A stretch of DNA of 63,769 nt, filler included, from Reticulomyxa filosa (Eukaryota > Protista > Foraminifera), in the NCBI GenBank assembly GCA_000512085.1. It is 19 parts of 19 records of this genome, joined end to end, with 100 filler letters (N's around TTAATTAATTAA, not from the genome) between each part and the next. Parts side by side here need not be neighbours in the genome. Positions count along the whole stretch, not along the records: positions 26,045 to 27,891 come from ASPP01021268.1; 18 more parts are not named here. One strand, 5' to 3'. The notes beneath the pieces were generated by a model. The model was given only the letters and a program-made list of their open reading frames with translations. It did no database searches and had not been told where the DNA came from. This document shows positions 25,862 through 27,996 of the stretch, one piece after another (position 1 is the stretch's first letter; every line of letters begins with the position of its first letter). The translations under genes were made by a program, and so were the position numbers.

Positions 25862-26176
25862 AAAAAGAAAAAAAAGTAAAACGATTTACTTTTTTTTCTT
25901 TAGAATGATAAATTTTTTTTTAAAAGTATGTATCTTTTTTTTTTNNNNNNNNNNNNNNNNNNNNNNNNNNNNNNNNNNNNNNNNNNNNTTAATTAATTAA
26001 NNNNNNNNNNNNNNNNNNNNNNNNNNNNNNNNNNNNNNNNNNNNTTGATTTGTATTTTTTTTTTTTTTTTTGGGAGAGGGATAGCAAAGATGTATTTGTT
26101 CTTTGCGATGTGATTGATGGCATCGATATACAATACATCAAAAAAAAAAAAAAACAAAGTCATTAGTTGAAAAAGA

Positions 26177-27865
26177 ATCACTGAATTGTTTGTACGACAT
26201 GGAAGAAGACGCCCGTGCGAAGTGCGCGGCATTAGTGTACCAGGCATTGAAGCAAGTATACACATTGAACATGACAGAAGCGGAATTCAATGCCACGGTG
26301 AAGGGGAAAATGAGTCGACCGAAACACAAACGAGGGGAAATAAGTATTCCGTGTTTCTTGTTGACAAAGCATTGTTCTGGCGATCCTCCTCCGGTTATTG
26401 CCTCAAAATTGGAGGAAGCTATTAACAAAATCATTGGCGACAATTCTGGAAATAGTTCTATATTCGCCGTCACTAATCCGATTGAAAGAGTTGTTCTTTT
26501 TTTTTTTTTTTAACCTAACAACGTCATCACTACTGAAAGAGTGAAGGAGAAGAAGATAAATAAATAAATAAATATATATTATATATATACATATATATAA
26601 ATAAGAAAGTCTGAACAATTTGAAAATTGCAATAGGTAGAAAAAGTAGATGGGTATCTGAATGTTCATCTGTTTACCAGTTTCCTAGGAGACGTAATCCC
26701 GAAAATCTTGAGTGAAACAAGCAGCTATTTAAATCGATTACCCAACACGAATGTGCGCGTGATGGTGGAATATTCCCAGCCCAACACGCACAAGGCGTTC
26801 CACGTCGGACACATGAGAAATGTCGCGTTGGGAGACTGTTTGGTGCGCTTGTATGAGCACCTTGGAAATGACGTGGTGGCGGTCAATTACTTTGGCGACG
26901 AAGGAGCACACATTGCTTCATGCTTGTGGCTGTTGAAACGCAAGATGGACGCCGGCTTGGACTTGGACGACGTTCGACAAGTTCCCGAAGAAGGACGCGG
27001 CGAATGGCTTGGGAACGTGTATACCGAATCGAAGCGATGGCTGGACTTGTCCACGTACACACATTTCCCATTCAAAGGAGTAGTTGCCGCCAAAGTGATG
27101 TCTGTCGACAAGCACCCCAGTGCCGACGCACCACCCAACTGGCATGTCGTGGTCGTCGATTATGGCGCCAGCAAACATGCCACGGTCGTATGTGGTGGCG
27201 AAGGATACAAAGTGGGGGACTTTGTCCCTTATGTGCCAATTGGTGGAACCTACAAGGATCAACCAGTAGAGCCTCGTGATATGAAGGGCGTATCTTCCAA
27301 TGGTGTCATTATGTCCGCCAATGAATTGGGAATTCGCTTGCCTTCAAAACCGCAAGAAGAGACAACACTGCCCGTCAAAACTGAGGAAAAACAGAAAGAA
27401 AAAGAACAAGAAAAGGAAAATGAGAAAGAAAAATCCAAGGAAAATGAAAAAGCAAACACTGGAAAAAAAAAGACAAAAAAGATAAAAAAGATAAAAACAA
27501 AGAAAAACAAGACAAAGCTCAGGCAGAAAAAAAGAAAGAACAACCAGATCGACGCATATTGATACTGAGCGAACATGCGGGTATCGACAAAAAGAAATTA
27601 TCGCCTGGCGTGTCACTCATCGAATTGGGAAGAAAGTCTCCTCAAGATTTGTTGGAATTTGGTGTCACTGACAAGGATTCCAGCGTCTCGGAAGTGTTCG
27701 AGAAATACACCAAAGAGAGCAGACAAGTGCTCACCTCTTTGGAACACAAAGACAAGGAATGGCATGCCTTGTGGTGGAAAACAAGACAGTGGTCATTGGA
27801 TGAGTTCCACCAAATTTACAAATGGCTGGGAGCAAGATTTGATTATGACTTTTGTGAATCCGAGG
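26177..27865 (+). CDS. RARS: Arginyl-tRNA synthetase (N-terminal half) with an inserted tRNA-binding OB-fold domain
   Basis: Add-1 domain (RGEISIPCFLLTK...PPVIASKL...IER|VEKVDGYLN, intron 26490-26635). VEYSQPNTHKAFHVGHMRNVALGD..VNYFGDEG is the class I HIGH region. LWWKTRQWSLDEFHQIYKWLGARFDYDFCESE follows. Frame break near the A9 run at 27463-27471. Confidence 0.93.
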
Positions 27866-27996
27866 TTTGTACATTCATTTTTTTTTTTTTTNNNNNNNNN
27901 NNNNNNNNNNNNNNNNNNNNNNNNNNNNNNNNNNNTTAATTAATTAANNNNNNNNNNNNNNNNNNNNNNNNNNNNNNNNNNNNNNNNNNNNCCCCC

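Follow-up and report, generated by a model that had tools for sequence, protein, structure and literature searches.

Arginyl-tRNA synthetase (ArgRS) is regarded as a single structural family that lacks editing and OB modules: the canonical enzymes of yeast (1F7U), E. coli (4OBY) and P. horikoshii (2ZUE) share an Add1 domain, a Rossmann fold with the insertions Ins1 and Ins2, and a DALR anticodon domain, and Ins1 contains a short turn. The B2 domain of the PheRS β subunit (PheT) is itself an inserted domain. B2 has also been found on other synthetases, at the N-terminus of TyrRS and the C-terminus of LysRS, in a few genomes of the Candidate Phyla Radiation and related bacteria (PMC5370408). AARS Online recognizes one ArgRS family, does not include ArgRS in its list of OB-fold carriers, and takes an indel of at least 50 amino acids as its family criterion (PMC11580382). 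Here, we describe an ArgRS gene in a 63,769-nucleotide stretch of DNA assigned to the foraminiferan Reticulomyxa filosa (the window, comprising 19 joined parts of assembly GCA_000512085.1), in which a PheRS-β B2-type OB fold lies within the ArgRS catalytic domain, at the helical hairpin tip of Ins1. The gene lies in the 1847-nt piece from ASPP01021268.1 (window positions 26045–27891, plus strand throughout) and is partial, consisting of an Add1 exon, an intron and a second exon. In contrast to the terminal B2 fusions of TyrRS and LysRS, the ArgRS insert is internal and conserved in one clade that takes in both bacteria and eukaryotes.

A first-pass annotation of the window had proposed an internal PheT-B2-like graft and had expected tRNA_bind to lie nested within a split tRNA-synt_1d domain. 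All of the motifs it quoted are present where it placed them, and the graft is borne out by Pfam and NCBIfam profiles, by the fold match described below, and by bacterial and eukaryotic relatives with the same nesting. In these profile searches, the gene pieces were searched separately. Within 26636–27460, read in one frame, Pfam returned tRNA-synt_1d (E 2e-16, profile positions 2–85; 60.3 bits against a cut-off of 23.3) followed by tRNA_bind (PF01588), which scored 29.6 bits in this segment and 32.6 bits for the insert alone, above the cut-off of 27. The NCBIfam profiles appear in the order argS 76–176, pheT 42–130 (E 2.5e-13), and argS 185–261, with the last resuming in the downstream piece. 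Accordingly placed along the gene, the first half of the Rossmann fold and the first Ins1 helix lie at 26636–27043 (tRNA-synt_1d, TIGR00456 76–176 and matches to ArgRS structures in the PDB), the main part of the OB fold at 27044–27334 (tRNA_bind and pheT profiles, fold match, column conservation), and its last strand and helix (RILIL ... PGVSLIELG) at 27550–27630, conforming to the conserved eukaryotic insert end I-x-x-L-P...G-x-x-L-x-E-x-G. The linker and the resumed Ins1 helix follow at 27631–27864, running through WSLDEF and DFCESE; this segment matches TIGR00456 185–261 and is 56% identical to residues 371–449 of the Plasmodiophora enzyme.

Among known OB folds, the B2 domain of bacterial PheRS β and YtpR are the closest to the insert in both sequence and fold. 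A profile built from 48 inserts matched PheT B2 best (E 8e-21) and the YtpR-like structure 3BU2 next, with Trbp111 and EMAPII near 1e-4. For the fold comparison, the insert of a bacterial homologue, that of Sulfidibacter, served as a stand-in for the window insert: in AlphaFold (AF2) models, the whole Sulfidibacter enzyme reached a predicted local distance difference test score (pLDDT) of 93 and its insert 96. This insert superimposed on PheT B2 (4p71) with Z 19.0 and a root-mean-square deviation of 2.2 over 119 residues, compared with Z 8.8 for Arc1p-C. The whole model aligned with yeast ArgRS at Z 39.0 and with the canonical enzymes at Z 37–39 over about 560 residues—with only about 20–27% identity between canonical eukaryotic ArgRS and the model in structural alignments. 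Unlike PheT B2, the insert lies inside the catalytic domain of a class I synthetase, and the LRG motif is replaced by DKxG in bacteria or DMKG in eukaryotes. Trbp111, Arc1p, MCP1 and EMAPII belong to the same Pfam family, share the Ser of the A76 pocket and the motif spacing, and, in eukaryotes, pair the OB fold with a lysine-rich segment. However, they are more distant from the insert (E about 1e-4; Z 9–12 for the group), their basic segment precedes the OB fold whereas that of ArgRS lies within it, and the deacylase Lys is absent from the ArgRS insert.

The insertion point is the same in all carriers, where about 132 residues stand in place of a 7- or 17-residue turn (about 125 amino acids net, or about 165–200 with the loop of the eukaryotic inserts). 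It corresponds to residues ~201–205 of E. coli ArgRS, within Ins1 (164–221), a region in which the crystal structure leaves D203-E204 disordered (PMC3956977). The hairpin tip tolerates changes in length, since insert-less relatives have a turn of 17 residues in Myxococcota (L016, L018, L019, L040, L050 and related loci) and of 7 in Oligoflexia and SAR324.

The architecture extends well beyond this locus. Nine GTDB genomes, those of Sulfidibacter corallicola, Acanthopleuribacter pedis, other Acidobacteriota, Bdellovibrionota and a Planctomycetota metagenome-assembled genome, match the gene in both of its parts at 38–47%; their genes are single open reading frames (ORFs) of 698–718 amino acids, compared with about 580–615 for insert-less relatives that share the SQPNTHKAFHVGH motif (Myxococcota, Oligoflexia, SAR324). 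A protein search gave 29 full-length bacterial-type clusters that carry this insert at an identical site, their named members belonging to Holophagae, Bdellovibrionota and Planctomycetota. Among eukaryotes, the nearest relative of the window gene is R. filosa RFI_14621 (L082:948-2452; 62%), and the insert also occurs in the foraminifera Bolivina and Nonionella, in the clubroot parasite Plasmodiophora brassicae, and among chlorarachniophytes in Lotharella, Amorphochlora and the Bigelowiella cluster—all of which we take to be Rhizaria. An Astrolonche fragment stops ahead of the insert and clusters with an insert-bearing sequence; the metagenomic members L079, L083, L085 and L086 could originate outside Rhizaria. 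In every clade member examined, across bacteria and deep rhizarian splits, the insert is kept intact. An assembly chimera or gene-model artefact is hardly credible as the source of the nested architecture: the window piece is short, frameshifted and without usable read coverage, but complete bacterial genomes, that of S. corallicola for one, encode the same arrangement in single uninterrupted ORFs, and it runs through continuous proteins in Lotharella, Amorphochlora and Plasmodiophora. No relative of the insert-bearing ArgRS was found on viral contigs.

Full-text literature searches, whose coverage did not extend to subscription journals, turned up no account of an ArgRS that carries B2 internally; there is a small chance that an earlier description exists. 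The insert-bearing proteins are already in public databases under automatic names. The architecture is not confined to the window, being shared with scattered bacteria and several rhizarian groups. Taken together, the insert-bearing ArgRS is real, conserved and apparently undescribed, and a monophyletic group whose catalytic domain has gained about 125 amino acids qualifies as a separate family under the AARS Online criterion.

Evolutionary trees were built on the contiguous stretch 26636–27340 of the window gene (27050–27340 for the insert), with canonical eukaryotic ArgRS sequences left out. With the insert columns removed, the host tree grouped the carriers as one clade (99/98) within insert-less bacteria, and the eukaryotes as one clade within the carriers (100/99); in the insert tree, all inserts formed one clade against PheT (100/98). 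The separate host and insert phylogenies that had been called for both recover one insert-carrier clade, and, together with the bacterial GTDB matches, the host trees uphold the earlier hint that the host belongs to a prokaryote-related ArgRS lineage. An approximately unbiased (AU) test, run on a reduced set, rejected a placement of the eukaryotes outside all these bacteria (p 0.026). These trees point to one insertion in bacteria and one transfer into eukaryotes. In a bacterial ancestor, an OB fold of PheT-B2 type (about 125 amino acids net) would have been inserted once at the Ins1 hairpin tip; the fused gene would then have spread through scattered bacteria and entered eukaryotes a single time, probably early in Rhizaria, and the OB fold would have gained its lysine/glutamate (K/E)-rich loop after that entry. 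Weighing against this history, a grouping of the eukaryotes with insert-less SAR324 and Oligoflexia was not formally rejected by the AU test on host data alone (p 0.09). Whether the eukaryotes are nested within or sister to the bacterial carriers differs among trees. That foraminifera, chlorarachniophytes and Plasmodiophora all have this ArgRS suggests that a core translation enzyme passed early from a bacterium into Rhizaria. One insert-bearing ArgRS, L088:112-1401 (P0072), does not group with the main eukaryotic clade; its charged loop is intermediate and its N-terminus of low complexity, and it could represent a second transfer.

With regard to function, we slightly favour the insert as a cis-acting helper that binds the tRNA 3' end. 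In the Trbp111–tRNA co-crystal, the OB fold grips the 3' CA end and the elbow contributes nothing; Arc1p shows the same 3'-end binding together with a need for its lysine-rich middle region, and OB fusions raise aminoacylation and bind the tRNA 3' end (PMC11286949). The putative A76 pocket of the window insert, R-D-M-K-G-V-x-S-x-G-V, lies at 27275–27307. In a residue register derived from hidden Markov model end points, all 48 inserts keep the Ser that corresponds to Trbp111 S82 and the Gly on either side of it, and the R75 equivalent is Lys or Arg in all 15 eukaryotic inserts. At the positions of Trbp111 R75, I77, F78, S82 and M85, the window has R, M, K, S and V, with the non-Ser positions varying in bacteria. 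The OB core is conserved at 43%, compared with 39% for Add1 and 47% for the anticodon domain. The preference for a 3'-end helper derives from the invariant pocket residues, the conservation of the OB core, and the 3'-end binding of Trbp111 and Arc1p. By analogy with these proteins, the OB fold would hold the single-stranded 3' CA end in its Gly-x-x-Ser-x-Gly pocket, adjoining the catalytic domain and independently of sequence; such capture would increase the affinity for tRNA, or serve to bring the acceptor end in and release it, and the lysine-rich loop, like the middle domain of Arc1p, would add an electrostatic contact with the body of the tRNA. Several observations weigh against this reading: the pocket motif is conserved across all PheT B2 domains and so may be structural, the position that would stack on C75 is variable in bacteria (K9, G7 and E5 of 33), the existence of insert-less sister enzymes makes the insert dispensable in principle, and the window copy is frameshifted in the assembly.

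One rival reading makes the insert a tolerated structural passenger, or a surface for docking proteins (e.g., a multisynthetase complex or an elongation factor), with little part in tRNA binding. The site is surface-exposed and disordered in the E. coli crystal, insert-less relatives are close in the tree, the insert tolerates a loop of 30–76 amino acids, and no conserved gene neighbourhood was found around the bacterial carriers; nonetheless, the insert is retained clade-wide with a conservation comparable to that of known tRNA-binding modules, and we consider a passenger role unlikely. CP1 editing domains are insertions in the catalytic domain of class I synthetases, and the location of the ArgRS insert recalls them. 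A cis editing module resembling the OB-fold deacylases MCP1 and Arc1p would hydrolyse tRNA-Arg mischarged with small amino acids or arginine analogues and so equip ArgRS for proofreading; the Ser equivalent to MCP1 S335 is invariant, and the R331 equivalent is Lys in 12 of 15 eukaryotes, window included. The OB folds of MCP1 and Arc1p deacylate Ala-tRNA, and each single mutation of K326, R331 and S335 abolished MCP1 activity (PMC12021450). In the window, this trio reads E, K, S, outside the pattern that defines the deacylase group. The K326 equivalent is non-basic in bacteria and eukaryotes alike (Glu in the window), that of R331 is mainly non-basic in bacteria, and the insert is nearer to PheT B2 than to Arc1p in sequence and fold, all of which makes editing rather unlikely. 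The Add1 domain at the ArgRS N-terminus binds the D-loop side of the tRNA. That side being taken by Add1, whereas the insert lies in Ins1 of the catalytic domain, the cis clamp on the tRNA elbow envisaged in the first-pass annotation appears improbable. Older Trbp111 footprinting and docking models (reviewed in PMC11286949) and the second contact that the lysine-rich region of Arc1p makes with the tRNA body would speak for a clamp, but the co-crystal has this OB family on the 3' CCA end (PMC11286949).

The B2 and EMAP fusions known from other synthetases are all terminal. An internal OB fold near the active site, together with natural insert-less sisters and cultured carriers (Sulfidibacter, Acanthopleuribacter), would allow a direct test of the role of CCA-binding OB folds in cis. 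The ArgRS of the clubroot parasite carries a feature missing from the solved yeast, human and bacterial structures. The most far-reaching combination—a second ArgRS family whose 3'-end-gripping OB fold also edits, with a single bacterial origin in the ancestor of Rhizaria, replacement of the usual eukaryotic enzyme, and use as a supergroup marker and selective clubroot drug target—we regard as doubtful.

The OB fold of the window gene is split by a K/E/D-rich loop of about 72 codons (27335–27549), identified as coding by its codon-phase bias. That a charged loop splits the fold had been recognized before and is a conserved eukaryotic feature, although its length had been put at about 60 residues; loops at this one position measure 30–76 amino acids in eukaryotic inserts versus about 7 in bacterial ones. 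Inside the loop, the reading frame switches by −1 at an A9 homopolymer (27463–27471), with one frame open to about 27465 and the −1 frame from about 27466; G is biased to codon position 1 before the run and to position 3 after it (p 0.003 and 0.001). A one-base homopolymer error in the assembly is the likely cause. Removing the 149-nt stretch from GT 27374 to AG 27522 as an intron would also restore the frame, but this explanation is rather improbable because T makes up about 6% of the stretch (against 35% of the genuine intron of this gene, which shows no G codon-phase bias and is T-rich), and because the stretch retains a codon-phase bias, switching phase at the A run, and corresponds to a loop that relatives encode. 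A real lesion of this copy seems less probable again, and a programmed −1 shift very improbable. Read in the upstream frame, the A run and the following G (27463–27472) look like a slippery-type heptamer for a −1 shift, a likeness judged coincidental, as relatives cross the loop in frame. The breaks in the relatives L079 and L086 are ordinary-looking introns.

Upstream, most of the Add1 domain is encoded by an exon at 26190–26489 (start provisional), recognized by homology to RFI_14621; the piece is cut upstream. Its Pfam Arg_tRNA_synt_N match is weak (E 0.037, under the cut-off), whereas full-length relatives exceed the cut-off, and the exon is 50% identical to the matching exon of RFI_14621. 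A 146-nt phase-0 GT-AG intron (GTTGTT...CAATAG) follows at 26490–26635, AT-rich, with 35% T and no codon periodicity, at a position identical to an intron of RFI_14621. The second exon extends from 26636 to a donor GT at 27865 and includes the SQPNTHKAFHVGH motif (26774–26812, with the HIGH-type HVGH at 26801–26812), GDEG (26894–26905) and the GEWLG helix from 26999. The KMSKS-like loop and the DALR anticodon domain, found in relatives, would fall past the edge of the piece in the window copy. Judging from the GT-AG introns (26490–26635 and the second donor at 27865), the gene is eukaryotic, though the encoded ArgRS is of bacterial type; a nuclear gene of a foraminiferan-like protist, with an ArgRS of the bacterial SQPNTHKAFHVGH subtype, is the best explanation. 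The first-pass annotation had overlooked the introns, the frameshift and how widely bacteria and Rhizaria share the design.

A 223-nt public contig matches window positions 26636–26836 at about 97.5%, with three listed differences, all synonymous, and its match ends precisely at the exon boundary 26636, as would be expected of a close relative evolving under purifying selection. RFI_14621, P0171 and P0178 carry long N-terminal extensions that resemble sequences for organellar targeting; Bolivina is represented by two related entries. Finally, in Bigelowiella natans, the Joint Genome Institute Genewise model Bigna1/50244 skips the OB insert, while an 809-amino-acid member of the same 90% cluster has it (P0112 versus P0172); homology-based gene calling may have removed the insert as a false intron, which could explain its being overlooked.
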